Positions 1 through 64,000 of a stretch of DNA of 64,000 nucleotides are shown in pieces. Both the position numbers and the translations under genes were made by a program. The stretch lies in sequence record PV654397.1; one strand, given 5' to 3'. Within the stretch, counting starts at the first letter, position 1, and each line of letters opens with the position of its first letter. The notes below the pieces were generated by a model. It saw only the letters and a program-made list of their open reading frames with translations, had not been told where the DNA came from and made no database searches.

Positions 1-165
1 GGTTCTTATATGTTTCAGTGTACCCTTCCATCTCGTTGACACACACTACATGATACTTTGGTTTAGCACATACAACAGTACTCAAGAATAGCAGTACTAG
101 TACTAGATATTTCATTTTATTACCTTATAAACAAGAACAGGAATCCTTTTACGGATTCCTATAAT

Positions 166-459
166 TTAGTCCTTTAATGTACCATTGTGTAAACGATTAT
201 ACACATCATTGCGACGCAATTCAACAATATCTTCAGCGTACTTCATTGTAAACGCCCATGCTTGTGGATGCACATTAAGCTTCATACGAATGCGATTCTT
301 CATCAATTCACCGCTTAGGCGAACAAACTCATGAACACCACGACTTCCGTACTCTGAAATCAAATCATTGATGTACATGTTGCGAAGGGTTTCGTCTGTA
401 CATTCTTTGACCATTTCTACGTCTGCCACGATGCTTGCATTTACTGAAGTACTGATCAT
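166..459 (-). CDS. hypothetical protein
   Basis: 97-aa ORF in tightly packed minus-strand run. Confidence 0.75.
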   Translation of the reverse strand: MISTSVNASIVADVEMVKECTDETLRNMYINDLISEYGSRGVHEFVRLSGELMKNRIRMKLNVHPQAWAFTMKYAEDIVELRRNDVYNRLHNGTLKD

Positions 460-470
460 TTTAAGTTACC

Positions 471-737
471 TTATTTGAATTGGACTGTAATTTTATCACC
501 TTCAACTACGAACTTACAGTCGTAGCGACGGGCCATATCCATATACATATGCTCAGAATACCACGGAACATCAATAACTGGATGCTCTGCGTATTGTAGC
601 ACTTCACGGTCACCAACAGTAGTGATGACGAAAGGAATGTTCATCTCTCGCAAAAACAACTCAGCACCTGGTGAACGATTGACAAACTCAGTGTCGTTAC
701 GCAAAGTAAAACCATTGTATTGTAATTTAAGCTTCAT
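471..737 (-). CDS. hypothetical protein
   Basis: 88-aa ORF, SD-like GAGG upstream. Confidence 0.75.
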   Translation of the reverse strand: MKLKLQYNGFTLRNDTEFVNRSPGAELFLREMNIPFVITTVGDREVLQYAEHPVIDVPWYSEHMYMDMARRYDCKFVVEGDKITVQFK

Positions 738-751
738 GATTATCCTCTAAG

Positions 752-1108
752 TTAATACCATTCTTTTAAACCATCAAGTTCGGCTATGTGAGTAATTATA
801 ACACAGATAACACTCAGGTCAAGCATTATTTGCTCATAATTTAATTTTATTCTATCATCATTGTATGCTCGAAAAACAACATCAAAGTCAAAGTAGTTAT
901 CGTTTTCATCATTCATTGGAATGATTCTATATCTACGTCTACCATCATCATTGAATACAGTCAAACACTGTTTGAATTTCTTCATTAACTGTGTAGTCAA
1001 TGCATTGTAATATGCAACATCATATTGTGTACAACGTGGGTCATTGGGTAGATAAAACGATACAAATTTTTTTAATTCTATTTGAGTCTTATCCATATAC
1101 AGCCTCAT
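752..1108 (-). CDS. hypothetical protein
   Basis: 118-aa ORF in packed run. Confidence 0.7.
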   Translation of the reverse strand: MRLYMDKTQIELKKFVSFYLPNDPRCTQYDVAYYNALTTQLMKKFKQCLTVFNDDGRRRYRIIPMNDENDNYFDFDVVFRAYNDDRIKLNYEQIMLDLSVICVIITHIAELDGLKEWY

Positions 1109-3339: not shown

Positions 3340-3367
3340 ATTATACAGTACTACAAACGTTTGTCAA
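3340..3367 (-). promoter_or_regulatory. sigma70-type promoter with AGTACT abutting the -10
   Basis: TTGACA-aacgtttgtagtactg(16)-TATAAT. Confidence 0.75.
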
Positions 3368-5794: not shown

Positions 5795-6010
5795 TCACAC
5801 TGCCGCTCCTAATAGGTCGGTAGCTTTCTTCAGTACTACGTCAATTGTTTCCAGTACTGCACCTTTGTGTTCAATTGATACAATATTATTATAAGTATCA
5901 AGGTCCAAGTACTCCATATATTCAGTTTTGAATACACGAACATCAGTACTAGTGATTTTAATATCACAACCTTTATCCCAAATAACCTGCATCATTTCAT
6001 TGGTAGTCAT
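5795..6010 (-). CDS. hypothetical protein
   Basis: 71-aa ORF. Confidence 0.7.
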   Translation of the reverse strand: MTTNEMMQVIWDKGCDIKITSTDVRVFKTEYMEYLDLDTYNNIVSIEHKGAVLETIDVVLKKATDLLGAAV

Positions 6011-6285
6011 TATTCAACCTTATCATAAACAAGTTTGTGTGTGCTTAGTACTTTGTTGAGATGTCCAGGGCATTCATATACATACAATCTCTCCTGACGT
6101 TTTTCCCAACCACCACAGATACGGCCTGATTGTGTACATACCTCATACTCGTTAATAAAAGACTTACCGGTGAATGTACAATCCTGACGAACTAAGTCTT
6201 TTGCACTAAACCTGCCGTCATCATTACATGCTGTAAGAAACATTGTACAGAATACAAAGACAACTGTCAATAGTTTTTTAATCAT
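6010..6285 (-). CDS. putative lipoprotein
   Basis: lipobox LTAC after hydrophobic leader. Confidence 0.7.
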   Translation of the reverse strand: MIKKLLTVVFVFCTMFLTACNDDGRFSAKDLVRQDCTFTGKSFINEYEVCTQSGRICGGWEKRQERLYVYECPGHLNKVLSTHKLVYDKVE

Positions 6286-6650
6286 TTAACATCACCCCAA
6301 CGGAAACCTTTCATATAATTCAAATTCACCTCAACTAGTTCATGTGTTTTTGTACACCAAATGGAGAGAGTTTTTGTAACATCACCAGGTTCAGATTCAT
6401 AATTTACACAATAACCTTCAATGCGTAGAGTTTTGTTAGTCCAATGTTCCCACTCAATCCAAATTTCATTTGGATAATAAACCATATCTTCTTTGAACGT
6501 ATGGAATTGATCCATTGGTAAATGACCTTTAACTTCAATTACTTCAGCACTTCGTGCCAGTTTTTCAAGCTTGTACTTTATTTCAGCAAGATATTCTTCA
6601 TCATTCAGACGAGTTAATAAATCTGTTGCACGGGTTGTATCAAGGCTCAT
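6282..6650 (-). CDS. hypothetical protein
   Basis: 122-aa ORF, coupled. Confidence 0.7.
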   Translation of the reverse strand: MSLDTTRATDLLTRLNDEEYLAEIKYKLEKLARSAEVIEVKGHLPMDQFHTFKEDMVYYPNEIWIEWEHWTNKTLRIEGYCVNYESEPGDVTKTLSIWCTKTHELVEVNLNYMKGFRWGDVK

Positions 6651-6898
6651 TGTTGTACTCCATTAATCACTGAAGTATTGATTCGTGTTTTACCGCTGCT
6701 GTATCCAGTACTGGTATTTGCATTAGGGCAATAAACTGTATACAAGGTTACGCCAGCACCGTCCTTTTGCATACGATAAATCTTACATCCTGCTTCTTGT
6801 AATTCAATAGGGAGAATAAAATCACTTGTGCGTTCTTTGGTTGAAGCGTCACATGCAGTGAGTAAAAATGCAACGAGTACTGCTACGATATATTTCAT
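6647..6898 (-). CDS. putative lipoprotein
   Basis: lipobox LTAC after hydrophobic leader. Confidence 0.75.
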   Translation of the reverse strand: MKYIVAVLVAFLLTACDASTKERTSDFILPIELQEAGCKIYRMQKDGAGVTLYTVYCPNANTSTGYSSGKTRINTSVINGVQQ

Positions 6899-7206
6899 TA
6901 ACGAACCTCCACTTCTTGAGAAAGAGCATGAGTCAGTGCATTTGAATTCGAACTATTCATTTCACGCTGACATACAAACATAATGGCATCTTGTACTGTA
7001 CCTGCGATTTCATACTCACGGCCTTCAGGATCTGTTACCAGATGTTCAACGATACAACCACCACGCAGTACAGAAGCACCAGTACTTACACTAATCCTGT
7101 AACCTAAAAAATCAAACTGCATACATGCGTCAGTAGGTTTCATCCAATAACCGCTGTTTTGATTCAAATCGATGATTACAAAACCTTGAGTGTTAGTTTG
7201 AAACAT
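6898..7206 (-). CDS. hypothetical protein
   Basis: 102 aa, GAGG SD. Confidence 0.75.
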   Translation of the reverse strand: MFQTNTQGFVIIDLNQNSGYWMKPTDACMQFDFLGYRISVSTGASVLRGGCIVEHLVTDPEGREYEIAGTVQDAIMFVCQREMNSSNSNALTHALSQEVEVR

Positions 7207-7227
7207 AGTTAATTCCTCATTTAATTT

Positions 7228-7291
7228 AAAAGGGCGGGAACGCAGTGACGAGTACGATTATGCTGTCTTTCCTTTCACTGCATTCCCTTTT
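7228..7291 (-). ncRNA. promoter-proximal stem-loop (small RNA or attenuator candidate)
   Basis: 13-bp stem GGGAATGCAGTGA/TCACTGCGTTCCC (one G-U), 26-nt loop, downstream T run. Confidence 0.4.
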
Positions 7292-7300
7292 ATATAAAAC

Positions 7301-7329
7301 ATAATACTGCTATTATTCAGTACTGTCAA
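7301..7329 (-). promoter_or_regulatory. sigma70-type promoter, AGTACT overlapping the -35
   Basis: TTGACA-gtactgaataatagcag(17)-TATTAT. Confidence 0.75.
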
Positions 7330-7619
7330 TCGATATAAGTACCTTTTTTAACATCACAGACTTCTTCCATCCAATGTGGATTTTCGTTTTTATCAGTGAA
7401 GATTTGTTCTGCTTCTTCTTTTGTTTCAGCTAGGACAATACGATCCCCTTCATCCAAATCACGGATACGATACACTTTCAGTTCTTGTTTCTTCTCAAGG
7501 ATATTACACAGTTCACGTGCTTTTTCTTCATCGCACTTCCCTTCATTAGCATAAAACCAAATTGCTTTTTTAATAAGGTCACGTTCTTCTTTAGAAAAAG
7601 ACATAATATTTCCTATCAT
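7326..7619 (-). CDS. hypothetical protein
   Basis: 97-aa ORF. Confidence 0.7.
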   Translation of the reverse strand: MIGNIMSFSKEERDLIKKAIWFYANEGKCDEEKARELCNILEKKQELKVYRIRDLDEGDRIVLAETKEEAEQIFTDKNENPHWMEEVCDVKKGTYID

Positions 7620-7649
7620 TTGTTAAAGTGGATTTCGTTTGATATAAAC

Positions 7650-7677
7650 ATTATACAGTACTGATATCTTATGTCAA
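7650..7677 (-). promoter_or_regulatory. sigma70-type promoter with CAGTACTG abutting the -10
   Basis: TTGACA-taagatatcagtactg(16)-TATAAT. Confidence 0.75.
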
Positions 7678-7773
7678 GTATTAATCACTAAAAATCATCA
7701 GATACCCAAACCAACCCACACAGACGACTAAGCTAACAATACCAAAGACAATCTCTAAAGTCATGTTGTATCC

Positions 7774-7992
7774 TTAATCAACGATTTTATATTCACGATG
7801 ACCATAGAATCCAGCCTCAAGGATGCGATTACCATCAGCATCTTCCAAATCCCACCCACGGGATGTTTCGGCAATAATAGTCATGATGTGACCTCTTGGG
7901 AAAATTCCACTCATGGTGGATACATCTTCAAGTAATTGAACTTTCTTACCAACATTGGAATTCGGTTTAAACATTTTATGGCCCTTATTCAT
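7774..7992 (-). CDS. hypothetical protein
   Basis: 72-aa ORF. Confidence 0.7.
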   Translation of the reverse strand: MNKGHKMFKPNSNVGKKVQLLEDVSTMSGIFPRGHIMTIIAETSRGWDLEDADGNRILEAGFYGHREYKIVD

Positions 7993-8167
7993 TGATCACA
8001 TCAAGTACTTTGTCCAGTTTCTTACCAATACTATCCTTTGGTTTATCACTATTCTGGAATACATTAGTACTGCAATACTCAGGACGGGTATTAGGGAACT
8101 TCTCGTTCATCCAGGAGTGACCATATACACCAAGAATGATACCTACGATAAGAATGATGATTTGCAT
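7985..8167 (-). CDS. small membrane-anchored protein
   Basis: N-terminal hydrophobic helix; GAGG SD. Confidence 0.7.
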   Translation of the reverse strand: MQIIILIVGIILGVYGHSWMNEKFPNTRPEYCSTNVFQNSDKPKDSIGKKLDKVLDVINE

Positions 8168-8181
8168 GATATATCCTCTAA

Positions 8182-8976
8182 TTAAATTACATATGGTTTA
8201 TAGTAATGAATCTCGTTTGCGATTGCAGTGAAAACTTTATTATTAAATCTTTCACCATAATCACGAAGTGATTCACCTTCTTCGCTTTCAATAAAGTAAT
8301 TATATACTGGTAGACGTGCGGTGTCAACACCTATAAATGATTTCATGTAAATTTGTACTAAACGATTCATTCCTTCATTTAAGCATTGCACCTCAAAGTG
8401 CTTGATACCTTTGTCTAAATGTTTGAATGCATTAATGATACCACGTTTAAAATCACGCTGCATAGTACTGAATAGATTCTCAGGGAACACTGTAATAGGT
8501 GACATTGATTTAAGAATGTATGTATCTTTAGCATTCTTAATATACTCAATGAAGCAGTAGTTAACGTCAGGCTCGATAGAACGATCAGCGTTATGATACC
8601 AGTGCTTAAACTCACTGTACTCAGCAAACTTATGCTGGCGTAATGCGTTACAATCCTCACACAATGCAGTCATGTTCTCTTTATCATTACCGCCCTGAAG
8701 ACAGTCCAGTACATTATGGTCTAACGTCATGCGTACAAGACGTTTCCCTTTAAGTACATAAGGTCTGAATTTATAACGGTCTTTAGTACTGTGCTTATGT
8801 AAAGTGAATACCACATTGGATTCACCACAACAATCACATTTAAAGCCATCACGTGACATTACATGAATGAGTTTTCGAGTATTTGGGCCGAACTCAGATT
8901 TAGTAATGTTGCCGACAATTTCTGATGGGTCGTAGTATTTTGAATTCCGGCGAATCAATTCATCTATAGTGCTCAT
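8182..8976 (-). CDS. HNH endonuclease domain protein
   Basis: CDCC...TLDH...GGN...N...LCEDCN HNH/zinc pattern. Confidence 0.7.
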   Translation of the reverse strand: MSTIDELIRRNSKYYDPSEIVGNITKSEFGPNTRKLIHVMSRDGFKCDCCGESNVVFTLHKHSTKDRYKFRPYVLKGKRLVRMTLDHNVLDCLQGGNDKENMTALCEDCNALRQHKFAEYSEFKHWYHNADRSIEPDVNYCFIEYIKNAKDTYILKSMSPITVFPENLFSTMQRDFKRGIINAFKHLDKGIKHFEVQCLNEGMNRLVQIYMKSFIGVDTARLPVYNYFIESEEGESLRDYGERFNNKVFTAIANEIHYYKPYVI

Positions 8977-8977
8977 T

Positions 8978-9208
8978 TTACATTAATCCTTCTATGCTAC
9001 AACCAATAAGTACTTTTTTCACTTCAATAACTCGTACCAAATAGAATCCATTTGAAAAGTTAAAACTATACATTTGTACTAAGGCATCTGCTTCAGATTT
9101 CGCACGGATACATGATAGATATAGTTCTCGTATATCGTCATCCAACGATGCTTGTTTCTCGTCATTGATAACAATAGAACGAATCTCAAAACGAACACCA
9201 TAACTCAT
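8978..9208 (-). CDS. hypothetical protein
   Basis: 76-aa ORF. Confidence 0.65.
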   Translation of the reverse strand: MSYGVRFEIRSIVINDEKQASLDDDIRELYLSCIRAKSEADALVQMYSFNFSNGFYLVRVIEVKKVLIGCSIEGLM

Positions 9209-9414
9209 TCTGTTTGTCCAACAATTAGTTTTTCTTTAGTATTACTATTGTAACACCACATTAATTCTTCACCAACTGTTCTAAGTGAAACGCTGTTTAC
9301 TTGTTCATACGTACTGTCACGTACTGCAATGCATTGATTCATTGAATTCATTGGGGTGATTTGTACACCAGATTGTGGTGAAAGAGCAATAATTAAAAAG
9401 ATTACTGAATTCAT
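9205..9414 (-). CDS. hypothetical protein
   Basis: 69-aa ORF, GAGG SD. Confidence 0.7.
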   Translation of the reverse strand: MNSVIFLIIALSPQSGVQITPMNSMNQCIAVRDSTYEQVNSVSLRTVGEELMWCYNSNTKEKLIVGQTE

Positions 9415-9478
9415 TAGATATTCCTCGATGGTTAATCATCCATCTCTTCGAGATGTCTGTTCGCTTCTAATACTACGT

Positions 9479-9507
9479 ATTCTACGCGAATGAATCATAA
9501 CTGTCAA
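9479..9507 (-). promoter_or_regulatory. sigma70-type promoter
   Basis: TTGACA-17-TAGAAT. Confidence 0.8.
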
Positions 9508-9545
9508 GGACTTTTAATATTGACGGGATTTGAGGAAGGGATTTT

Positions 9546-9971
9546 TCTTCCCCCCGCACGGAGGGAAATTTGACGCTGATGGTATCAGAGCTATTGCATT
9601 GAAGATTACTCATAACGAGTGCGAAAGCGGGTCATCCTGTTTCTCTCTACTTCAGTTTCATATGACGGTCTACACTTTTAAACATAGTGTATCTTCATTA
9701 AGTATCTATGCAATCAAATACTTAATGTGAGTACTCAAATTTTGGACGCAACTTTCCTGTACAAAATTCGATAACTCTCCCTTAGATAATTCGTAAGGTG
9801 TTATCCTTATATGTCTATCGAGGAACCACCAGCTATCCTAACGTGGTTCTTTATACAGCCGCATTGCCGTGAGGGGTTCAAACTATGCCCACATCTAACG
9901 GGTTTCTTTTGCTGTTCGCTACAATGAAAAGCTCATCTATCCTTTACATTTTCAAGTGAAGTAGGGGAAGA
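9546..9971 (+). ncRNA. large structured non-coding RNA candidate (~430 nt), family unassigned
   Basis: ends pair (TCTTCCCC 9546-9553 / GGGGAAGA 9964-9971), nested long-range and many local helices, GNRA loops; G-U pairs favour + strand. Confidence 0.65.
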
Positions 9972-10041
9972 TTGTCAGTACCAGTACTGTCATTGTGATT
10001 GTACATAGATCATTGTATCACCATTAATAAATTTGTCCCAT

Positions 10042-10072
10042 AAAAAAAAGGGCTGACCGAAGTCAACCCTTT
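10042..10072 (-). terminator. intrinsic terminator after sigma gene
   Basis: AGGGTTGAC-TTCG-GTCAGCCCT plus T8. Confidence 0.85.
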
Positions 10073-10076
10073 AATC

Positions 10077-11045
10077 TTAAAAATCTTCGAACTCATAACC
10101 TTTTGTCTTAACCATCTTACGCAGTCGTTCCATTGCTTCAGAGTACTTACGGTGCAATGAAGAACGAGCAGTCATGACCTTACCCTTCTCATCTTCAAAA
10201 CCACTCTCAATGATTTCTCGTAGCGTTTCTGGTTCAGAATAAGAACCAATACCATGTACACGTTCAATCAATTCACGGTCTTTGGCAGATAGGTTACTCA
10301 TCATTTCTGCAATACTTTGTACCAGTGGGGTACTGACAGTTTCTACGCCTAAGTTGTAATCAGGTTCAACTGAAGTAACAATGTCAGATAATGTACTTTC
10401 TGAATCATTACTCATTTTCATATTCAATGCTACATAAGTGTTATTGTAAGTTAGACAATTCTTAACGTGTTGAATCTCAATACCAGTCTCTTTTGACACC
10501 ATCTCAGGAGTTGGGTATTTACCATGTTTCCTTTGATACTCTTCTACACAACGTTTCACATAAATGTTATTAACACTCATATAACGTGGGAAATGCACTA
10601 GATAATTAGCATCTGCACTTTCGTTATAGATTGTCATGTACACAGTTGTTGTTGCATATGTAATGAACTTAACATTTTTGGTAGTGTCGAACGTATGAAT
10701 TGCTCGCATTAAACCTTCAACACCATAAGAAATCTTATCTTCAAATGGGATAAAACATGTACACTTACGTGCAACACTTACTACCATTGGATAGTTGTAG
10801 CGAACCAAAAGGTCAATGTTCTTTTCAACGTCAATACCATCACGCACTGCTTGGATGAGCATTTCATTCGTTATCCCTTTAGGGCGAGTTAAGCTGATAC
10901 CTGTTTTTGGTTTCTCAAACTTGTGACCGTCATGTTCTTCTTCTTCTTCGACGGAATCAAGAGCCTCTAATACGTTGACTTCTTCACTAGCAAAACACTC
11001 ATCCAGTACTTCTTCAGAAATTGCATTTAAATCAAGCTTTTTCAC
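10077..11045 (-). CDS. RNA polymerase sigma70-family factor
   Basis: region 2 LVRYNYPMVVSVARK...EDKISYGVEGLMRAIHTFD...KFITYA; region 3 PTPEMVSKETG; region 4 ETLREI. Confidence 0.9.
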   Translation of the reverse strand: MKKLDLNAISEEVLDECFASEEVNVLEALDSVEEEEEHDGHKFEKPKTGISLTRPKGITNEMLIQAVRDGIDVEKNIDLLVRYNYPMVVSVARKCTCFIPFEDKISYGVEGLMRAIHTFDTTKNVKFITYATTTVYMTIYNESADANYLVHFPRYMSVNNIYVKRCVEEYQRKHGKYPTPEMVSKETGIEIQHVKNCLTYNNTYVALNMKMSNDSESTLSDIVTSVEPDYNLGVETVSTPLVQSIAEMMSNLSAKDRELIERVHGIGSYSEPETLREIIESGFEDEKGKVMTARSSLHRKYSEAMERLRKMVKTKGYEFEDF

Positions 11046-11067
11046 TTACTTCTCCTAATGAATGAAA

Positions 11068-11565
11068 TCAAAAACGGTATACATTAATATTATCATCGGT
11101 ATAGATATCATGGTTATGAACATCCATGAAGGTATCAAATACCTTATCAAGAAGAGTATTATACTCTTCATGTACTGCTGCATCAAGCATGTATTCACCA
11201 CCACTACCCATAAAGAATGTATAATCATTATGGAGATAATCAATCTTCTTGGTAAACTTACCCTTATTAACGATTAAGTGAATGATGTAATCTTTTGACA
11301 CAAGAACACAGTGACAACTCGCCTTGCGGTCTGGTATCACAGTCTCTTGTGAAATCAAGTATCTCAGTACTTTGTTAATTTCACTAACTTCACCGCAAGC
11401 ACTAAACAGTCGGTCGTGTACATACAATGTTTTTTGTGAAACTACACCATAACTAAGTTTTGGTTTCAACGGGAATAGGTTCAAAAATGAACGTTGCTCA
11501 GTTGATGTCACTTTTGAATCAGTAAGTAATACTCCCAAGCGTTTATCAATATAAACAGTTGTCAT
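11068..11565 (-). CDS. Ntn-hydrolase (HslV/proteasome beta-like) protein
   Basis: starts MTT, LTDSKVT, later MGSGG. Confidence 0.6.
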   Translation of the reverse strand: MTTVYIDKRLGVLLTDSKVTSTEQRSFLNLFPLKPKLSYGVVSQKTLYVHDRLFSACGEVSEINKVLRYLISQETVIPDRKASCHCVLVSKDYIIHLIVNKGKFTKKIDYLHNDYTFFMGSGGEYMLDAAVHEEYNTLLDKVFDTFMDVHNHDIYTDDNINVYRF

Positions 11566-11566
11566 A

Positions 11567-11986
11567 TTAAACCTTATCTAAAAATTTATCATAGATATAA
11601 AATTCTTTATCGTTGAATACATTAATTCTAGTATCGAAGCGTTGTAGTGTATTCATGTATAATGAACTTTTTAAATAAAAATACAATGCAACAAATTCAG
11701 ATATATGCATATTCTTTTTATTATTACATAAATTCTTTAGCATTTCAATGCTATCAAAATCATCTTTATCATACCTGTACTGGTAAAAATTATATCTATT
11801 GAACTGACACTCATAGATACGAAGTGCCATTATGTCAATACATGCTTTAGATTTACAGTACTTATTCAATACGTCATAATCACCCACACATAATGCTACA
11901 AAGATTTTATGTGCAAGCGTAGCTTTACCTTCAATAGTATAATAACCAAAGAACTTACTGATTAAGTAATGTATAAATCTAAGCAT
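11567..11986 (-). CDS. hypothetical protein
   Basis: 139-aa ORF. Confidence 0.65.
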   Translation of the reverse strand: MLRFIHYLISKFFGYYTIEGKATLAHKIFVALCVGDYDVLNKYCKSKACIDIMALRIYECQFNRYNFYQYRYDKDDFDSIEMLKNLCNNKKNMHISEFVALYFYLKSSLYMNTLQRFDTRINVFNDKEFYIYDKFLDKV

Positions 11987-11991
11987 TGGAT

Positions 11992-12252
11992 TTAGAATTT
12001 CTCCGAAATTACCAGTGTATCATCATAGTCATCAGCAACGGAGTTCAGTACTTCCAAATTACTTTCACCAGAAATACTTTGTACTTCGTTCAAAAGATAG
12101 TTTAGATCAACAGTTGTTACTTTTTCTGAATCAAACACACAGAAAGTCAATTCAGCGTTTGGACAGATCTTCTTCAGATTATCAGCAACAACTTGTTTGA
12201 AGTTAAAAGATGGGGAAGCAACCAGGTTAACTGCAACGAGAATAGATTTCAT
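11992..12252 (-). CDS. hypothetical protein
   Basis: 86 aa, AGGA SD. Confidence 0.75.
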   Translation of the reverse strand: MKSILVAVNLVASPSFNFKQVVADNLKKICPNAELTFCVFDSEKVTTVDLNYLLNEVQSISGESNLEVLNSVADDYDDTLVISEKF

Positions 12253-12326
12253 AATGTTTTCCTTTTTAGCTGATAATTAAATTAGGAGCACATTGTACTC
12301 CATGTTATTGGTTAAGTCAAATACTT

Positions 12327-12578
12327 TTAGATACCGAGTACTGAATTCAATTCTTTACGCTTGTTATATGAATCAGATTCAAACTTGCTTTTCTTATTGA
12401 AAAGGGATTCGATATCCTTATAGATAGCTTCGATGGATTTAGTTACAACCCATTCGGATTCCTGAAGCATAGCTTGAAGACGTGCGTACTCAACTTTGAT
12501 AGTACTGCGAAGTTCTTCACAAGCTTCTTCGTTCTTAATTAGTGCTTCACTAAGTTCTTTGACCTTATCGATGTTCAT
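12327..12578 (-). CDS. coiled-coil hypothetical protein
   Basis: 83 aa helical, AGGA SD. Confidence 0.75.
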   Translation of the reverse strand: MNIDKVKELSEALIKNEEACEELRSTIKVEYARLQAMLQESEWVVTKSIEAIYKDIESLFNKKSKFESDSYNKRKELNSVLGI

Positions 12579-12637
12579 AAGTTCCTTACCATTTCCCAGT
12601 TTTGATGTAATAATTATATATGACTCAATAACTCACG

Positions 12638-13063
12638 TCAACTGTTTTCCGTACCTTTCTCTGCCATTTTGGTGATGTGCCATTTGAGTACTGATTTGTG
12701 TACCATAAAAAATGTGAATGCAAAGACTGTAATGGCTGCTGAAGTAACACTATTAGATAAAGACCCAAGTTGGATGTTAGTACCTAAAATAACAATAAAT
12801 GGATACAACACAATCAATCTACTGTAAGGTTCGTCTCCAGTATCACGGATAAATCCCAGCCTTTCATGATCAGTATCCATAGTGACAATTGGACAGAACA
12901 TAAGTGCAGACATAACAGCAATACCAATTTGTGCTACATTGGCAATTGTAAACCACAAAGGATTTAAACCATATGAAATGTTGTTTTCAGTACAGTAATA
13001 TCCAAATGTATTGATTGCACAAACTAAAAATACAAAAATACAAATCTTATTGTATCCCCTCAT
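12638..13063 (-). CDS. putative membrane protein
   Basis: four hydrophobic segments. Confidence 0.7.
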   Translation of the reverse strand: MRGYNKICIFVFLVCAINTFGYYCTENNISYGLNPLWFTIANVAQIGIAVMSALMFCPIVTMDTDHERLGFIRDTGDEPYSRLIVLYPFIVILGTNIQLGSLSNSVTSAAITVFAFTFFMVHKSVLKWHITKMAEKGTENS

Positions 13064-18710: not shown

Positions 18711-19126
18711 TTCAACCTCTGCATAGAAACGTACTCGTTGATTGCATCAACTAAATCATATCCAGACATCACCGTATCATTGATGGTCACATTGTACTTT
18801 TTATGAACTTGTGTACCATCTGTTTTACTGTATAGTGATCCATCTGGTTGAATTGTTAAAGTATTGTTTAGAATAAAATCAAACATTTCTTCTTTTGATA
18901 GATTTACAGTACAGGTGTCAATATGATCAGTACTTACCAATTCACGAGTATGTTTAACACCGTACTCGGTGTGTTCACCTACACTACGATGCAATACCTT
19001 TAACTGCTCCGCTGCTGTCTCTTCGTCATAGACATGAATAGTTTCAGTACTGTATAAAATATCTTGAATATTACCAGTACTTACTTCTGTCCACGTGTCT
19101 TTGAAATGTGTTTTGATTGTTTTCAT
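18707..19126 (-). CDS. hypothetical protein
   Basis: 139 aa. Confidence 0.7.
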   Translation of the reverse strand: MKTIKTHFKDTWTEVSTGNIQDILYSTETIHVYDEETAAEQLKVLHRSVGEHTEYGVKHTRELVSTDHIDTCTVNLSKEEMFDFILNNTLTIQPDGSLYSKTDGTQVHKKYNVTINDTVMSGYDLVDAINEYVSMQRLK

Positions 19127-19137
19127 AGAAGCTAGTA

Positions 19138-19590
19138 TTAGTTATATGAAGTGAATAGATCGATACTTTCATCATCTACACTGATTAATTTACCAGTTGA
19201 ACTAACAAACACAATATTACCACCAGGGGTGAGTTGAACACGCTGGTTTACTGAATATTGATCACTAAGGTTATAATTAGCCCATTCAACTACATAACGC
19301 TGTTCAACACCATTAGTATCATAAAGATAAACGTGTGTAACATCACGCATTTTTAAACGTTCTAGCAGTGTTGAGTTATCCATGAAATCCGATGGTGTAT
19401 CACTACGCAATGCAACACCGAACTCACCAATACCAGTACTAATAGTTAGACCGTTGGAAAAACGACTACAAAGAGTTTTCTCGTCAGCAATATGCATCCA
19501 TAAAACATTCTTTACATCAATCTCAATGAACTCACAATTTTCAAAAACTAAACCTACTTTAGAAACCTTACCATTAAATTGCATCATCAA
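19138..19590 (-). CDS. hypothetical protein
   Basis: 150 aa. Confidence 0.7.
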   Translation of the reverse strand: MMMQFNGKVSKVGLVFENCEFIEIDVKNVLWMHIADEKTLCSRFSNGLTISTGIGEFGVALRSDTPSDFMDNSTLLERLKMRDVTHVYLYDTNGVEQRYVVEWANYNLSDQYSVNQRVQLTPGGNIVFVSSTGKLISVDDESIDLFTSYN

Positions 19591-20023
19591 CTCCTATTTT
19601 TTTGTATTTTAAAATAAAATCTCTTGCAGCTTTCATAAGTTTAAATGGAATAGCTAATTCTTTGACAGTACTATCCATGAAATGTTCTTCTTCTGTTTTA
19701 TAGAATGTTGACATGAAATGGTCACAATCATCAATTCTATCCCAGAAATCAGAATTACTTGGTTTGTTGGCAATAACAGTGATTGTTTTAGTATAGGAAG
19801 CATGTATCGTTAATCCAATATCACCCTTTTCAACACGAATTATAAATGAACTATCAGATGTATAGTTCAGCCAACAATCTTTACCGAAGTATACAGTACT
19901 GTGTTTCTTCTCAAATGTATTACTGTTTTCAAGTACATCAATGACAATATCAACTGCATTGTCACTTAAAATTTTGACCATATCATCTTCCTCGTAGGGT
20001 TCTGGCAATTTCAAATATACCAT
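19574..20023 (-). CDS. TEE-FQ-S paralog family protein
   Basis: KTEEEHFMDSTV. Confidence 0.75.
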   Translation of the reverse strand: MVYLKLPEPYEEDDMVKILSDNAVDIVIDVLENSNTFEKKHSTVYFGKDCWLNYTSDSSFIIRVEKGDIGLTIHASYTKTITVIANKPSNSDFWDRIDDCDHFMSTFYKTEEEHFMDSTVKELAIPFKLMKAARDFILKYKKIGVDDAI

Positions 20024-20387
20024 TTATGTTGTCAACTGACAATCCACACATATCGTATAATGTAGATAGCTGAAAGAACATATCTTCATCTATAGTAACA
20101 TGTTCAATCTGCATTTGCAAGAGCACTTCACCAAGAAAATGATCGTATGTTTGTATCTTAAAAGAATCATAATATATATCAATGAAGAATTTTGGCACAC
20201 CATAGAACGAAACGACAAGTACAATGTTGTCAGAAGCTTCACATGGAACACTCAATGTATTTTTAAATGAACGGTATTCAAATGTGTACGGGTCTACGTC
20301 ACATGTATAGAATGAATTACACCCTTCAGAAAATATTACACCATTTTCAATTAGCATAGATAGTGTATGTGGTGGAATTTTCAACAT
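19983..20387 (-). CDS. TEE-FQ-S paralog family protein
   Basis: IDEDMFFQLSTLYD. Confidence 0.75.
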   Translation of the reverse strand: MLKIPPHTLSMLIENGVIFSEGCNSFYTCDVDPYTFEYRSFKNTLSVPCEASDNIVLVVSFYGVPKFFIDIYYDSFKIQTYDHFLGEVLLQMQIEHVTIDEDMFFQLSTLYDMCGLSVDNINGIFEIARTLRGR

Positions 20388-20395
20388 TTAAATGT

Positions 20396-20812
20396 TTATC
20401 CTTTATTTTGTTGTACGTTTTTATGTAGTACACCACAAATATAAAATAATTTACTTAGATTAGAATAACTTATGTTAGTTAGATCGTATACGAAATTTAG
20501 TTGCATGTACATATCTTCAGTTAAATCATACAACGATTCATCCACATCAATTACGATTTTGTGCGTGGTATCAATCTCTACTTTATTAGGCCACATATCA
20601 ATAACATAATCATTACCATGTTTTTCAGATATGGAAATGAACACATTATCGCTTTGTTCTAAAAACTCCATGTATCCGTTAAGAAATGATCCAGTTATTA
20701 TCTCATATTCACCAGAATAATACGTTGTTCTGGACTCAAATGCATTAAAAAATATAAAACGATATGTTTGGTTGATATACTCATCCATTAAACTAATAAC
20801 TTCTTTATTCAT
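20396..20812 (-). CDS. TEE-FQ-S paralog family protein
   Basis: LTEDMYMQLNFVYD; start set at MNKEV. Confidence 0.7.
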   Translation of the reverse strand: MNKEVISLMDEYINQTYRFIFFNAFESRTTYYSGEYEIITGSFLNGYMEFLEQSDNVFISISEKHGNDYVIDMWPNKVEIDTTHKIVIDVDESLYDLTEDMYMQLNFVYDLTNISYSNLSKLFYICGVLHKNVQQNKG

Positions 20813-20830
20813 TACATTAATCCCCACAAG

Positions 20831-20861
20831 AAAAAAGGCCGATTCATTATGAATCAGCCTT
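20831..20861 (-). terminator. intrinsic terminator
   Basis: AAGGCTGATTCAT-A-ATGAATCGGCCTTTTTT. Confidence 0.75.
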
Positions 20862-20902
20862 AAGTATAACACAGTAGAAGTAAAAATGTCAACTTCTAAA
20901 AT

Positions 20903-21038
20903 ACAGTATCAAAGAGGAATAAAAAGATACTGTTAGAGGGTAACGAATATAATGAACCATGAGGGTGATATCATTATACTTTAAAAGAGTGATAGCTTCT
21001 AGACAAAAGGAGGAATTCAGTACCGACTAGAAGCTATC
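20903..21038. ncRNA. array of three hairpins with purine-rich SD/GGA-like loops (+) or anti-SD loops (-)
   Basis: 8-, 8- and 12-bp stems; + strand loops AAAGAGGAAT, ATGAGGGTGAT, AAAAGGAGGAATT. Confidence 0.5.
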
Positions 21039-21051
21039 CGGTTAAACGATT

Positions 21052-21336
21052 TCAGTACTGAATGTTTAGTTTAGGATGAGTATGTCCATCTTCGATTTGC
21101 TTTAGAATCGAGTCGCGGATCTCCACTGCACCCTGATAACTGTATTTATCGTTCGGAACTACCCATGTATATTCACCATCAGTGGTTTTAAAATCAATAC
21201 ATGGATTGTCTCTGTATTCAGATGCAATGATTGAAATAACATGCAATGAATTCAATGAATGATTTATATAAGGATAATTGTTATTGTCTCGGAACGTGAA
21301 TGTTTTTAGTTCATCAGGTGCAACAATAAATTCCAT
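21052..21336 (-). CDS. hypothetical protein
   Basis: 94 aa. Confidence 0.7.
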   Translation of the reverse strand: MEFIVAPDELKTFTFRDNNNYPYINHSLNSLHVISIIASEYRDNPCIDFKTTDGEYTWVVPNDKYSYQGAVEIRDSILKQIEDGHTHPKLNIQY

Positions 21337-21527
21337 TATTCATCCTCGTACTTCTTGAATGGTTGAACATCTCCATTGAAGTCTTTGCACATCTTAGTTA
21401 CACGAACTTCAGTGTTGTTGTGGTAATTTTTCTTAAATTCATAAGAAACATAATTACGAATACCAGGTGTATGAATAATAGCAAGAACCAATGTACGACC
21501 AAATAAGCATAACAAATTCAAAAACAT
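21336..21527 (-). CDS. hypothetical protein
   Basis: 63 aa. Confidence 0.6.
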   Translation of the reverse strand: MFLNLLCLFGRTLVLAIIHTPGIRNYVSYEFKKNYHNNTEVRVTKMCKDFNGDVQPFKKYEDE

Positions 21528-21540
21528 ATTAAGCTCCGAG

Positions 21541-21900
21541 TTATGGATTAATCAAACGACACATACCAACTATAACATTTATCTCTTCTAATGTCAAGTC
21601 ACCAATGTCATTTATCATTGAGTACTGGAATAATGACTCTTCTGTGTACTCAAAATCATGTACTGCTATAAAAAATGGCTCCTTAGAAACATCTAATGTT
21701 ATCTTAGCCATTGTACTATATAAATCAAATTGATACAAAATATTAGGAGAAGTATATGCTATGTATATATTATTAGATTCAGATGGGTGTACCAGTGTGA
21801 ATACATCATAACATAATATTTTTATGTTAGGATCATCAAAATTACCAGTATAAAGATTCTTACGAACATCTTGCATTATACGAGTTATTAAACTAGTCAT
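21541..21900 (-). CDS. TEE-FQ-S paralog family protein
   Basis: YTEESLFQYSMIND. Confidence 0.75.
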   Translation of the reverse strand: MTSLITRIMQDVRKNLYTGNFDDPNIKILCYDVFTLVHPSESNNIYIAYTSPNILYQFDLYSTMAKITLDVSKEPFFIAVHDFEYTEESLFQYSMINDIGDLTLEEINVIVGMCRLINP

Positions 21901-22309
21901 TAAACGGATTTGGAACCTCTTCTGGAATCAATCTTTTAACTTTAAGGATAGCACTAATGTCCTCAAATGTCAATCCATTTAGATCGTTTACGAGACAGTA
22001 CTGAAAGAATTTTTCTTCAGTATCAATATCGTCAAAATTCAATTCAATTCCAGTGTCATAATAATCACTATTTACATTAGCAATTCTGATTTTAACTCGT
22101 TCAAAATACACATCAAATGAATAAAAATGATCATTGATTTCATAACCAAGAAAAATATTAAAACATTTACTCAAATCAGTGGTTTCGTTCAAATCGTCAT
22201 CATAGCAAAAAACTCTAACTTCACCAATATCTTCTAATTGTACATCATGCAGTGACCATGCGTTGTTTTTTAATACGTAGTTCACCATTTTAACAATGTT
22301 GTATGTCAT
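21893..22309 (-). CDS. TEE-FQ-S paralog family protein
   Basis: DTEEKFFQYCLVND. Confidence 0.75.
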   Translation of the reverse strand: MTYNIVKMVNYVLKNNAWSLHDVQLEDIGEVRVFCYDDDLNETTDLSKCFNIFLGYEINDHFYSFDVYFERVKIRIANVNSDYYDTGIELNFDDIDTEEKFFQYCLVNDLNGLTFEDISAILKVKRLIPEEVPNPFND

Positions 22310-22325
22310 AGTTTACCTTAAAAAT

Positions 22326-22721
22326 TTATTTACGATTCCTTGCGGAGTTCTTGTTCCTTGCTCTGAATGTCGGTGTCATTGAATGACAATTGGGGCAAAG
22401 AATTTTTAAATTTGGTAGGTCATTATTGGTAGCATCACCATCAATGTGCTCAACTTCTGTCAGTACTGCACCATCTGTTGGGTGACGTTTATCCCATCCA
22501 CATTCTTCACATGCAGTTCCGCGTGTTTCATGTAGATATCTTCTCACAAATGGACATAACTGTATAGTAATACCTTTATATCCTGGATGTTCACCGTTAA
22601 GCCATTTATCAACTTTCTGTTGATATTGTAGCTCTTGTTGACATGCAACACTACAATATTTTGTTTGGCCCTTTCGAACTAATTCAATTTTACAACATGC
22701 ACAATAACGTTTTTCTTTCAT
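22326..22721 (-). CDS. HNH homing endonuclease
   Basis: CACC/CSVAC N-terminus; CEECG...EVEHIDGDATNNDLPNLKILCPNCH; start set at MKEKRY (GGAG SD). Confidence 0.85.
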   Translation of the reverse strand: MKEKRYCACCKIELVRKGQTKYCSVACQQELQYQQKVDKWLNGEHPGYKGITIQLCPFVRRYLHETRGTACEECGWDKRHPTDGAVLTEVEHIDGDATNNDLPNLKILCPNCHSMTPTFRARNKNSARNRK

Positions 22722-22727
22722 ATAGTT

Positions 22728-22752
22728 CTCCATATATTATGGAGTATTTATA
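22728..22752 (-). promoter_or_regulatory. T4-type late promoter plus RBS-sequestering hairpin
   Basis: TATAAATA at 22745-22752 followed by 7-bp hairpin CTCCATA/TATGGAG covering the SD. Confidence 0.7.
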
Positions 22753-22786
22753 TGTAAGAAAAATATCATTTTTAATCGTAGATTTG

Positions 22787-22858: not shown

Positions 22859-22864
22859 TGAGAA

Positions 22865-22919: not shown

Positions 22920-22920
22920 G

Positions 22921-22972
<52 letters not shown>

Positions 22973-23087: not shown

Positions 23088-23828
<741 letters not shown>

Positions 23829-25121: not shown

Positions 25122-25130
25122 ATTGTTTTG

Positions 25131-25214
25131 CTGGTAGTACTGGAGTCGAACCAGTCTTGTCATTTCTGACACGGATTAACAGTCCGTTGCATAAGGCCGA
25201 TATGCTAACTACCA
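25131..25214 (-). tRNA. trnN: tRNA-Asn(GUU) with long variable arm, no encoded CCA
   Basis: acceptor TGGTAGT/ACTACCA, G73; ACGGA-CTGTTAA-TCCGT; variable stem GTCA-GAAA-TGAC; ACTGG-TTCGACT-CCAGT. Confidence 0.85.
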
Positions 25215-26315: not shown

Positions 26316-26340
26316 ATTATATCAGTACTGAACTATTTAG

Positions 26341-26344: not shown

Positions 26345-26936
<592 letters not shown>

Positions 26937-28566: not shown

Positions 28567-28915
<349 letters not shown>

Positions 28916-29596: not shown

Positions 29597-29641
29597 TATT
29601 GTTCTCCTGTTTAAAACAAAACAATAGCATATATATCAGTA

Positions 29642-29824
29642 CTAGTCAATTTTTTTGTCTCTAACCGCAAGCTCATAGATGAACCAGTGATTACTATCCT
29701 CATCAAGTACAAATGATTTGAAAAGTTGTTTATCTTTTAACACATCATAATGACCTTGGCGTATACCAAAACAAAAAGGATTATGTTTAAATTTTAGTTC
29801 ATCTAACCATTCTTTGTGTGTCAT
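29642..29824 (-). CDS. MTHEEW-family small protein (60 aa)
   Basis: MTHKEWL...GHYDVLKDK...VLDEDSNHWFIYELAVR, aligned to 28926-29096. Confidence 0.75.
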   Translation of the reverse strand: MTHKEWLDELKFKHNPFCFGIRQGHYDVLKDKQLFKSFVLDEDSNHWFIYELAVRDKKID

Positions 29825-51200: not shown

Positions 51201-51229
51201 ATTCTACAGGCAACACTCAGTACTGTCAA
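51201..51229 (-). promoter_or_regulatory. sigma70-type promoter, AGTACT overlapping the -35
   Basis: TTGACA-gtactgagtgttgcctg(17)-TAGAAT. Confidence 0.8.
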
Positions 51230-61981: not shown

Positions 61982-61997
61982 TCCATTGTCTCTTTGT

Positions 61998-62020
61998 AAA
62001 AGGGGAACACCATGTTCCCC
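61998..62020 (-). terminator. hairpin between the topoisomerase genes
   Basis: GGGGAACA/TGTTCCCC stem plus T run. Confidence 0.6.
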
Positions 62021-62031
62021 ATTAATCTATA

Positions 62032-63996
62032 TTATTCCATCCAGTTCTTACGATCATCAGCACGTTTCTTGTTGAAAATCAAATCAAGAGTTTCACCAAG
62101 GCGACCATCATCTGTAATCGCTACTGCAACACTGTTAGTGAATGCATCACGGAAGTTTGCTTTTTCTAACGTACCCAATCCTTTCGCACGGGTTGCTTTC
62201 CAACCTTTCCAATCATCTGGGTTGTATTCATGTACATCATGACCATAGTAGTACTTGGATTCCTTACCTTTCTCTAGAATGATGAATGGTGTTTTGAATA
62301 TATACACAAATGGATTCTCTGGGTCTTGGAATAGTTCAGGCCAGAATTTGTATAGGAAGTTACATACTAAAGCACCAATGTTCTTTCCATCCTCATCTTC
62401 GTCGGCACAGATATAAAGCTTACCATAGTTAAGGTCTGCTCTTTCCGCTTTTACACCAGGAATCAGGTTGATACTCGCCATTATATCATGCAATGCCATT
62501 GAATCCATTAATTCTTTGGTTTTCTCATTACCACTGACGTTCATAATTTTACCACGCAATGGTAGAATACCATGAACTTTAGGATCACGAGCACTCGCCA
62601 TGTTGGAAATAGCAGAATCACCCTCAGCAATTAGTAGGATGCATTTGGAACGATCCGTACCTGTACTGTCCAATAGTTTTGCAACTTTACCTTTCAGTAG
62701 TTTTTTAGCTAGACGGCGATCTTCTTCTGCATCTTTCTTGTTTGTACGAGCAGCACAGCGTTCAAAAATCTCATCAATCCACTCTTTGTTCTTCTTGACT
62801 AATTCATCAAACCACTCGGAATTCATCGCTTGTTGAATTGGACGAATAACGTTTTCGTTAGTTAGTTTGGATTTAATCTGTGAGTTGAATGATGGTGCTT
62901 TCATCGTTGTTACGTTATAAATCAACAAACCTTCTTCAATATCAGAGCGGTTAGGTTTCATCTTGCGTTTCTTTGATTCTTTCTCTAGAGCAGTTCCTAC
63001 TCCTAATGAGAAGAATTTCTTGAATGTATCAAGATGTGTACCACCATCAAATGCTGGGGCATTGTTAACCAAACCATGCATATGGAAGTTAGTGTTCATA
63101 CCCGATACTGCATTAGGAACAATGTAGAAAGTACTGTTAAAGTTGAATGATTCATCTTTAACATTCAATTGCATCAGTTTAGATGCGTTGAATAGTGCTT
63201 TTTCTGTAGTTCCTTTAATTGCAATACGCTTACCGTTAAGGAAAATCTTATAGGTAGGGTTAGCAGCAGACATTTCTTTCAAAATACTGTATAACAATTC
63301 GGTTGGCAGTTTACGGTTAGGAAATACCTCAGAACTCAGAGTGAAGCGAATTGTTGTTCCAGTCTTATCTGCTTGAACCTTACGAATAGTTGGTTCATGT
63401 ACATGAAGTTCAGGAAACATAATAGTTCCTTCTTCGAACTTCTGATTGAACTTATAAAAACCGTCATATCCGTCATTGCTACTTTGTGTTTTATACGGGC
63501 GACCTTGGCGATGGATTTCAAGTTCAGCTTTAGAACTTACAATCATTGCAACTGAACCACCCAATCCATTCTGACCGATTGTTTCATCACGCTTCGAGTC
63601 ATCAAAGTTGCGACCAGTTTTAGTTTCAGTCATTACCATTGTACATAGATTTTTCTGATACTCAGGAACATAGTCAATTGGAATACCACGACCATTATCA
63701 CTGATCTCAAAGGATAACTCTTCTTCATTGAAATCAACTTTGAGTACTGGTTCTTTTGTGCCAGCTTTTTTAAATTCATCTAAGCTGTTATCGATAATTT
63801 CACGAGTAGCAGTTAGAATTGCAGGAACCCACTCAACGTTTTTAACTTCATATCCAGACTCACCAAAGATCAGTACTTGACTTTCGTGAACAGAACGTGA
63901 ACCCAGATACATCTCAGTACGTAAGCGAGCATGTTGATAATCGTTTAGACGTTGTACATCATGTTCCTGAAGAACAGCACTTTCTTTCTTAGCCAT
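62032..63996 (-). CDS. type II DNA topoisomerase, GyrB/ParE-like subunit (T4 gp39+60-like)
   Basis: EIIDNSLDE, DNGRGIP, GQNGLG, AEGDSA, PLRGKIMN, DEDEDG, KGLG. Confidence 0.95.
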   Translation of the reverse strand: MAKKESAVLQEHDVQRLNDYQHARLRTEMYLGSRSVHESQVLIFGESGYEVKNVEWVPAILTATREIIDNSLDEFKKAGTKEPVLKVDFNEEELSFEISDNGRGIPIDYVPEYQKNLCTMVMTETKTGRNFDDSKRDETIGQNGLGGSVAMIVSSKAELEIHRQGRPYKTQSSNDGYDGFYKFNQKFEEGTIMFPELHVHEPTIRKVQADKTGTTIRFTLSSEVFPNRKLPTELLYSILKEMSAANPTYKIFLNGKRIAIKGTTEKALFNASKLMQLNVKDESFNFNSTFYIVPNAVSGMNTNFHMHGLVNNAPAFDGGTHLDTFKKFFSLGVGTALEKESKKRKMKPNRSDIEEGLLIYNVTTMKAPSFNSQIKSKLTNENVIRPIQQAMNSEWFDELVKKNKEWIDEIFERCAARTNKKDAEEDRRLAKKLLKGKVAKLLDSTGTDRSKCILLIAEGDSAISNMASARDPKVHGILPLRGKIMNVSGNEKTKELMDSMALHDIMASINLIPGVKAERADLNYGKLYICADEDEDGKNIGALVCNFLYKFWPELFQDPENPFVYIFKTPFIILEKGKESKYYYGHDVHEYNPDDWKGWKATRAKGLGTLEKANFRDAFTNSVAVAITDDGRLGETLDLIFNKKRADDRKNWME

Positions 63997-64000
63997 TTGA

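Follow-up and report, generated by a model that had tools for sequence, protein, structure and literature searches.

We asked why a group of phages, when phages are the textbook avoiders of palindromes, should purge nearly every GC-containing palindrome from its DNA and yet drive one, AGTACT, to about 1,000 copies per genome. The question is raised by a 64,000-nucleotide stretch (hereafter the window) identical to positions 62,001-126,000 of Escherichia phage WPEC5 (PV654397.1), a 381-kb jumbo myophage of the RaK2/PBECO4-like type with direct terminal repeats of about 21 kb. The window has a coding fraction of 93% and nearly all of its genes, which are mostly small, lie on the minus strand; those with assigned roles include a sigma factor, a C5 DNA methyltransferase, a clamp loader and a topoisomerase II. 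The close relatives of WPEC5 include fEgEco12, EC.P1 and CMSTMSU (98-99.8% identical; for fEgEco12 the identity to the window is 99.8%); identity falls to about 81% for PBECO4 and 121Q (Asteriusvirus), and RaK2, CBB/GAP32 and Serratia BF lie further off. The results establish that a DNA-level, strand-symmetric and clade-wide force favours AGTACT amid intense avoidance of palindromes; what we infer is that a protein reads the word, and the role of that protein.

AGTACT was found 166 times in the window (about 2.6/kb), compared to 17.65 ± 4.33 copies (maximum 29) in dinucleotide-preserving shuffles of the same DNA, and it had the highest order-1 Markov z-score of any hexamer (z 35); the longer word CAGTACTG was present in 40 copies, with 0.8 expected. 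A first-pass annotation of the window had counted about 31 sites in the first 10 kb and had judged the density to be similar throughout; our count for the same 10 kb was 33, and 6-14 sites were found per 4 kb along the whole window. Its statement that the sites fall in different reading frames and in intergenic DNA was borne out by the distribution over the three frames (67/32/54) and by the intergenic density of 2.3/kb, compared to 2.6/kb in coding DNA. Synonymous-codon shuffling within each gene gave 38.6 ± 5.3 copies and codon-order shuffling gave 22.4 ± 4.5, vs the 150 observed in genes; when all 4,096 hexamers were ranked under synonymous shuffling, AGTACT came first (z about 18) and the next ranks were taken by words overlapping it. 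The positions at which a synonymous change could create the site were filled by AGTACT in 58%, 38% and 46% of cases (frames 0, 1 and 2), vs about 13% expected from codon usage. The dipeptides Ser-Thr and Val-Leu were over-represented by 1.5-fold and 1.35-fold, while the reversed Thr-Ser and Leu-Val stood at 1.0, so the force that favours AGTACT extends into protein sequence. The annotation had proposed that the pressure acts on DNA rather than protein, and it proved right on each of these grounds (all frames, noncoding DNA, symmetric flanks, codon controls passed, dipeptide usage distorted); AGTACT stayed the top outlier among hexamers under the Markov, dinucleotide and synonymous-codon nulls, and an excess was left after control for codon and dipeptide usage.

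The signal had been supposed to be genome-wide, which was in full agreement with the counts for the non-redundant 359,664 bp of WPEC5 (the basis of all whole-genome counts given here), where 984 sites were present with about 94-111 expected. Density was highest in the terminal repeat (6.5/kb) and lowest in the conserved replication genes (about 1.2/kb, still at least 4-fold above expectation). This excess stands against an otherwise extreme avoidance: AGTACT was the sole clearly enriched palindromic hexamer of the WPEC5 genome (9.35-fold; the runner-up reached 1.7-fold), 22 other palindromic hexamers, including CCATGG, CTGCAG, GGATCC, GGTACC, GCATGC and TGGCCA (each expected 24-53 times), were wholly absent, and the tetramer GCGC was found 0 times vs 219 expected in 360 kb. 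For the host, a 50-kb sample of E. coli K-12 contained AGTACT at 0.06/kb, about 45-fold less densely than the phage, and GCGC at 6.8/kb; thus both words separate phage from host DNA almost maximally.

Counts in sampled segments of other members of the clade showed 8-12-fold enrichment in four genera, Asteriusvirus, Alcyoneusvirus, Mimasvirus and Eneladusvirus, with 110 sites observed vs 12 expected for PBECO4, 136 vs 14.5 for EJP2, 91 vs 9 for RaK2, 98 vs 11 for Serratia BF and 117 vs 9.5 for CBB (12-fold). The relatives PA5oct (3 observed vs 14.3 expected), Atu_ph07 (2 vs 3.2) and XacN1 (0 vs 6.6) had neither the enrichment of AGTACT nor the absence of GCGC; the unrelated coliphage alia had 0 AGTACT vs 11.6 expected, and the ICP1-like vibriophage JSF5 had 4 vs 12.6. 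Absence of GCGC tracked AGTACT enrichment exactly (5/5 enriched phages vs 0/5 of the others sampled) and may represent immunity to a GCGC-directed nuclease. Since AGTACT was depleted in alia, PA5oct, XacN1 and JSF5, the word appears to be one that phages normally avoid, and AGTACT-specific restriction appears to be a common selective pressure. The depletion in unrelated phages, along with the purging of other palindromes by the clade itself, argues that AGTACT is specifically tolerated and favoured here. The enrichment is real, is at the DNA level, and is clade-wide.

The anatomy of the site was symmetric, with an extended consensus of yC-AGTACT-Gr. C was present at -1 in 47-54% of sites and G at +1 in 43%, the opposite choice (G at -1, C at +1) was depleted to 7-10%, T was weakly preferred at -2 and -3, and the information beyond the hexamer was confined essentially to the adjacent positions. 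The C and G flanks occurred together 215 times vs 200 expected from independent flanks, and independence of the flanks is the prediction of additive half-site recognition. The annotation had described many sites as extending symmetrically. The three examples it gave do exist (TATTCAGTACTGAATA at 23236, ATTCAGTACTGAAT at 23358 and CTTCAGTACTGAAG at 28732), the last of them, which it had placed at about 28734, being actually part of an 18-mer at 28730-28747; extension beyond C(-1)/G(+1) was just about 1.4-2-fold above chance, with 17 palindromes of at least 10 bp in the window vs 12 expected, and 7 of at least 12 bp vs 3.3. Long cruciform-forming palindromes were not supported, extension past 8 bp being near chance. 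Spacing of the sites, examined at short range, was near-Poisson (median 242, mean 360, about one site per 365 bp), with gaps of 20-24 bp about 2.4-fold over-represented.

We compared the sites between genomes. Between WPEC5 and PBECO4 (16% divergence), 78 of the 122 aligned sites were conserved (64%), vs 41% both for all hexamers and for hexamers of the same composition (p = 4e-7), and the per-base divergence was about 0.10 inside the sites and about 0.14-0.16 outside; site turnover left 44 sites in WPEC5 only and 26 in PBECO4 only. At deep divergence (about 60% amino-acid identity, with third positions near saturation) about 30% of the sites coincided, mostly because conserved peptide contexts fill independently in each genome. 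Where a site was permitted in both genomes, the other genome had it in 46-86% of cases if WPEC5 had it and in 22-46% if WPEC5 did not, and the association with WPEC5 was non-significant for RaK2 and BF. The slow loss of sites, together with the filled opportunities, points to a force that retards loss and keeps filling, and that in the long term maintains density and not position.

A minor share of the sites was placed within promoters. Noncoding DNA of the terminal repeat held 12 AGTACT per kb, and the form seen there on the coding strand was that of sigma70 promoters with the arrangement TTGACA-N9-AGTACT-g(a)-TATAAT/CATAAT, often with a second AGTACT one base upstream of the -35 hexamer and 22 bp from the first. 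Of the 205 coding-strand sequences in the genome that strongly resembled promoters, 35 carried AGTACT, at offsets relative to the -10 hexamer that peaked at -7/-8, at -17/-18 (TTGACAGTACT) and at about -28. The window promoters with a site (Table 1) had spacers that were otherwise unrelated, and like arrangements were present in CBB, A4 and BF. The palindrome thus recurred at a fixed core-promoter position across promoters, as would an operator for a repressor, and judged by their sequence context these predicted promoter positions are classic operator positions. The likeness to operators of dimeric repressors over sigma70 promoters extends to the location of the palindrome, which lies over the -35 and -10 hexamers or in the gap separating them at set distances, to the repetition in many early promoters, and to the second site, which is often two helical turns away; the difference is that promoters hold only about 5% of AGTACT sites, all others being within genes. 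Two further observations were made in the terminal repeat (WPEC5 1-20,600): it contains dozens of near-identical early promoter cassettes of the form TTGACA-N16/17-TATAAT (12/12 matches) with 1-2 AGTACT embedded, and a recurring 28-nucleotide hairpin, AAAGGGATTGACTCCGGTCAGTCCCTTT, overlaps a -35-like TTGACT.

The sole long gap in the distribution of AGTACT was at WPEC5 343,573-352,020, a region of about 24 small genes. The plus strand of this island is devoid of AGT, and its coding strand hence of ACT, vs an expectation of about 170, while ACT on the plus strand (coding-strand AGT) is as frequent as usual; the WPEC5 genome has no other trinucleotide desert. The desert was also found in PBECO4 (NC_027364, about 116,900-124,500), where it spans 7.6 kb at 78% identity, and in phage A4 (ON286972, segment positions 5,806-12,784; 7.0 kb, with island proteins about 30% identical). 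A ban on ACT that is kept at about 30% protein identity must be actively maintained in these three Asteriusvirus genomes. Recent acquisition was rejected as the cause of the AGTACT-free island, which is equally AGTACT-free in PBECO4 and A4, the cause being the ACT ban. Within the island AGTACT was replaced by coding-strand AGTACA (45 copies, 5.3/kb) with the same flank preferences and at the same density; two constraints are therefore superimposed, and the force that promotes AGTACT targets the closest allowed word. By analogy with ACA-less mRNAs, which resist MazF, the ban most simply suggests a need for ACU-free mRNAs that would be immune to an ACU-specific ribonuclease, or alternatively a strand-specific DNA enzyme. 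Pfam and PHROG scans of the island proteins gave no functional assignment. Just upstream of the island (WPEC5, about 354,000-359,600) there is an array of open reading frames of about 70 residues with almost no AGTACT, with TGTACT instead on the coding strand, and with reduced AGT; the same holds for the array in PBECO4 (segment positions 19,000-23,000) and in A4 (segment 1-3,000).

The reading that we favour, tentatively and with a probability of roughly 40%, is that AGTACT (yCAGTACTGr) is the recognition site of a putative symmetric, probably dimeric, phage DNA-binding or DNA-marking factor. A dimeric factor would make sense of the half-site logic and of the fixed geometry at promoters, of the contrast between host and phage, and of the specific protection that AGTACT would need from restriction enzymes that cut it. 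Because the word is so much denser on phage than on E. coli DNA, the candidate factor would load selectively, and presumably densely, on phage DNA, where it could act as a label of "self", a coat or a protection. At the early sigma70 promoters it would meet the same site in the spacer (about -19 to -14), over the -35, or just upstream of the -35 and 22 bp away, and its binding there might shut off or tune early transcription. Such a factor would be predicted to prefer a TTCAGTACTGAA duplex over a point-mutated duplex. The annotation had listed several functions for the motif; of these, the site for a dimeric factor gives the best fit, by the independent half-sites and the operator-like promoter positions, self-marking is possible, and neither a Chi-like nor a packaging or nicking signal found support. 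The motif is without polarity, as a palindrome with symmetric flanks must be, and has no link to the Chi of RecBCD; as for a packaging or nicking signal, the sites are spread along the DNA at the density and near-Poisson spacing given above.

Several observations weigh against a dimeric factor. More than 90% of the sites are intragenic and without promoter context. At depth their positions are nearly independent, which suits a density-dependent function and a non-functional drive equally, and the slow evolution of sites at closer range cannot separate selection from biased repair. One-mismatch variants of AGTACT were also mildly enriched (1.2-2.5-fold in the genome, most strongly for changes at the outer positions). 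Some 40 proteins, neighbours and candidates, were scanned with Pfam and PHROG, and no binding protein or DNA-binding domain was found among them; no reader protein was seen among the island proteins or in the gene neighbourhoods of the sigma factor and the Dam-like methyltransferase. We found no prior report of an abundance of AGTACT or ScaI sites in the literature on jumbo phages, Asteriusvirus, PBECO4 or 121Q, and the motif goes unmentioned in the papers on CBB, RaK2, PA5oct, fEgEco12 and Sharanji.

The enrichment could instead represent a molecular drive of the kind considered for the highly iterated palindrome HIP1 or for uptake sequences, in which a biased repair, gene conversion or recombination process shared by the clade makes AGTACT from near-cognate words and no function of the motif is needed; we regard this as possible, if on the doubtful side. 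It explains the opportunistic filling and the absent deep positional conservation equally well as does a dimeric factor: density rather than position is kept at depth, and about half of the synonymous opportunities are filled and dipeptides are distorted, as with uptake sequences. The halo of one-mismatch variants is also as expected from a drive, and Elhai in 2015 reportedly described such a halo, strongest at outer positions, for HIP1; moreover AGTACA, the nearest allowed word, accumulates in the ACT-free island. Arguing in the other direction, AGTATT/AATACT were not depleted (1.36-fold), and the mark that very-short-patch repair of deaminated 5-methylcytosine would leave is thus missing; the C5 methyltransferase is probably CpG-specific and AGTACT lacks CpG; and no Vsr-type match was seen in two annotated endonucleases scanned, in a search that was very incomplete. 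The genes annotated as "endonuclease" and "DUF4379" gave only noise in Pfam. The fixed operator-like placement amid unrelated spacers points to function rather than drive, and for HIP1 itself a conservation analysis favoured selection over biased repair (PMC5861425). The specific version in which AGTACT is the target of the C5 methyltransferase and is maintained by very-short-patch repair (the HIP1 model) is weakened by the Dnmt3-like nature of the enzyme, the m5CpG (5-methylcytosine at CpG) of RaK2, the undepleted AGTATT/AATACT and the homologue in alia, which has no AGTACT.

HIP1 (GCGATCGC) and the alternate iterated palindromes of cyanobacteria are the closest known phenomenon. Like AGTACT they are short, hyper-abundant genome-wide, and present in all frames and intergenic DNA; they are conserved beyond neutral expectation, with the outer positions the most tolerant of deviation (PMC5861425). 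With regard to what defines a repeat of this type, AGTACT showed an order-of-magnitude excess genome-wide (9-10-fold; 12-fold in CBB), at the low end of the range for HIP1, which is enriched 15-300-fold (PMC5861425); it occurred in all frames and between genes in a manner unexplained by codon or peptide usage; and its conservation exceeded the neutral level at close range (64% vs 41%) and was weak or non-significant at deep divergence. It differs from HIP1 in being an AT-rich 6-mer enriched 9-12-fold, in being borne by a lineage of lytic phages where HIP1 is borne by the chromosomes of cells, in having no evident cognate methyltransferase, and in its placement at fixed operator-like promoter positions beside extreme avoidance of other palindromes. 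The uptake signal sequences (USS) of Haemophilus, the DNA uptake sequences (DUS) of Neisseria, and Chi are likewise over-represented genome-wide by a DNA-level process, in all frames and with effects on protein, and for them too density counts more than position. These words are asymmetric and are read by known machines (uptake receptor, RecBCD), unlike AGTACT, which is palindromic and in a virus; Chi is polar relative to replication and AGTACT is not. The asymmetric, orientation-biased word expected of a Chi-like hotspot was not what we found here, and E. coli Chi was not notably enriched in the phage (12 + 25 copies).

We also considered if the phage encodes a modification directed at AGTACT (methylation of adenine at N6 or of cytosine at N4, or another mark) that would serve as protection from ScaI/Eco255I-type cleavage and as an epigenetic self-mark. 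This is compatible with either a dimeric factor or a drive, and as an explanation on its own we consider it unlikely. In its favour, AGTACT is avoided by other phages, and other palindromes are avoided by this clade, so the word must be specifically protected; the sign of the effect is the reverse of ordinary restriction-site avoidance at the ScaI/Eco255I site, AGTACT being 9-fold enriched in the same genomes that avoid 22 palindromic hexamers and GCGC, and the depletion that such avoidance produces was seen instead in alia, PA5oct, XacN1 and JSF5. Protection lifts negative selection, however, and leaves the 9-fold positive enrichment unexplained. The highly iterated palindromes of cyanobacteria are said, in Elhai's 2015 account, to co-occur with cognate orphan methyltransferases, and WPEC5 encodes two methyltransferases that could be considered. 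One is a Dam-family adenine methyltransferase (PF05869) located elsewhere in the genome; enzymes of PF05869 are typically GATC-specific. The other is the C5 enzyme of the window (Table 1), which is very short, aligns end to end with the catalytic domain of mammalian DNMT3A/3B, and has orthologues in PBECO4, 121Q, CBB and RaK2. Bisulfite sequencing of RaK2 revealed m5CpG, and, in favour of modification, RaK2 DNA was reported to be cut by methylation-insensitive enzymes only (PMC3622015); the DNA of fEgEco12 was cut as predicted by ten enzymes, including the CpG-sensitive ClaI, NruI and SmaI (PMC13070987), which argues against modification. The m5CpG of RaK2 and the cutting of fEgEco12 DNA by CpG-sensitive enzymes are conflicting observations. 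The C5 enzyme is probably CpG-specific and so neither the reader nor the writer of AGTACT; since AGTACT has no CpG, it is a weak candidate for marking the word, and phage alia has a 50%-identical C5 methyltransferase, yet zero AGTACT.

It is improbable that AGTACT is preferred by an enzyme acting on phage DNA, and not by a regulator; the candidates would be the T4-type topoisomerase II of the window, cutting as A|GTAC|T with a 4-base stagger, or a primase or nickase for which each strand presents an ACT. Type IIA topoisomerases do make 4-base staggered cuts with symmetric preferences, GTAC-centred substrates being strong for some gyrases, and the complete exclusion of ACT from one strand of the island shows that this trinucleotide is read by some machinery. 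Topoisomerases normally need no dedicated sites, and the orthologous topoisomerase II is present in Atu_ph07 (45% identity) and XacN1 (28%), where the enrichment is absent.

Very improbable is a role for the motif in titrating or recruiting the host nucleoid-occlusion protein SlmA and so blocking host cell division. The core hexamer of the SlmA site (GTGAGTACTCAC) is AGTACT, the site is likewise a palindrome, there read by a dimeric helix-turn-helix protein, and the enriched clade infects Enterobacterales, which have SlmA, while the unenriched relatives infect Pseudomonas, Agrobacterium and Xanthomonas. SlmA requires G, T, purine, A and G at half-site positions 1-5 (PMC3020112), and these specificity-determining flanks are absent or opposite in the phage: there were zero matches to GTRAGYRCTYAC (GTRAGY/RCTYAC half-sites) in 360 kb, C was preferred at position 3 (G was just 7%), and G was not enriched at position 1. 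SlmA was rejected on the flanks. Equally improbable is that the excess simply follows from codon, dipeptide or oligonucleotide composition, which was rejected, or that the motif acts in RNA, for example as an RNase site: GTAC, AGTA and TACT are enriched, a maximal-order Markov model predicts 134 of the 166 sites, and every site is also in mRNA, the genes being nearly all on one strand, but the expectation falls to 94 when the sites are masked, so that the hexamer itself accounts for the enriched sub-words, the synonymous, codon-order and dinucleotide shuffles leave a large excess (4-7-fold for the first two), the noncoding density is equal or higher, the flanks are strand-symmetric and the reversed dipeptides are not enriched.

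The pattern implies an undescribed cis-acting system, whether a protein that reads the word, a mark or a drive through repair, in phages under development for therapy, with a pressure that bends codon and even amino-acid usage. A broader proposal, speculative and rather doubtful, is that RaK2-like phages mark out their own DNA and RNA through the words these contain and not by base modification or a protein shell. If so, three features would be parts of one system: AGTACT would be a barcode of "self" for a phage factor with a role in protecting or organising the genome and in the timing of early transcription; the absence of GCGC would be immunity to a phage or host activity on GCGC-rich host DNA; and transcripts of the ACT-free 8-kb island, being without ACU, would escape a ribonuclease specific for ACU. 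The role of highly iterated palindromes has been debated for decades for HIP1 and could be tested here with a lytic phage in E. coli K-12, for which the promoter-embedded sites offer immediate experimental handles. The abundance of AGTACT would also serve as a simple bioinformatic marker of the clade in metagenomes.

Table 1. Sites and genes of the window discussed in the text (positions are those of the window)
Feature	Position	Strand	Remark
Three-site tight cluster of AGTACT	77..104	.	sites at 77, 93 and 99
AGTACT in sigma70-type promoter spacer	3347..3352	-	TTGACA-N9-AGTACT-g-TATAAT
AGTACT in promoter spacer	7657..7662	-	TTGACAtaagatatcAGTACTgTATAAT
AGTACT in promoter spacer	26324..26329	-	TTGACTaaatagttcAGTACTgaTATAAT
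AGTACT in promoter spacer	26745..26750	-	TTGACTaaatagttcAGTACTgTATAAT
AGTACT overlapping -35 hexamer	7319..7324	-	TTGACAGTACT
AGTACT overlapping -35 hexamer	51219..51224	-	TTGACAGTACT ... TAGAAT
AGTACT abutting -35-like TTGACT	29638..29643	-	grouped with the -35-overlapping type
16-bp palindrome	23236..23251	.	TATTCAGTACTGAATA
14-bp palindrome	23358..23371	.	ATTCAGTACTGAAT
Longest perfect palindrome around a site (18 bp)	28730..28747	.	TTCTTCAGTACTGAAGAA
Phage sigma70-family sigma factor (regions 2 and 3)	10077..11045	-	context for promoter-embedded sites
tRNA-Asn(GTT) gene	25130..25214	-	ARAGORN; absent from GenBank record annotation; AGTACT at 25136 in 3' acceptor end
Dnmt3-like C5-cytosine DNA methyltransferase, 286 residues	38609..39469	-	PF00145, DNMT3A/B catalytic domain, E ~1e-23

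The tRNA-Asn(GTT) gene adjoins genes for tRNA-Met and tRNA-Ser. At the other end of the hexamer ranking from AGTACT, TAAATA and TATTTA were the most under-represented hexamers genome-wide (e.g., 76 vs 283); this is consistent with avoidance of spurious T4-type late promoters (TATAAATA), the phage encoding a gp55-like sigma factor.

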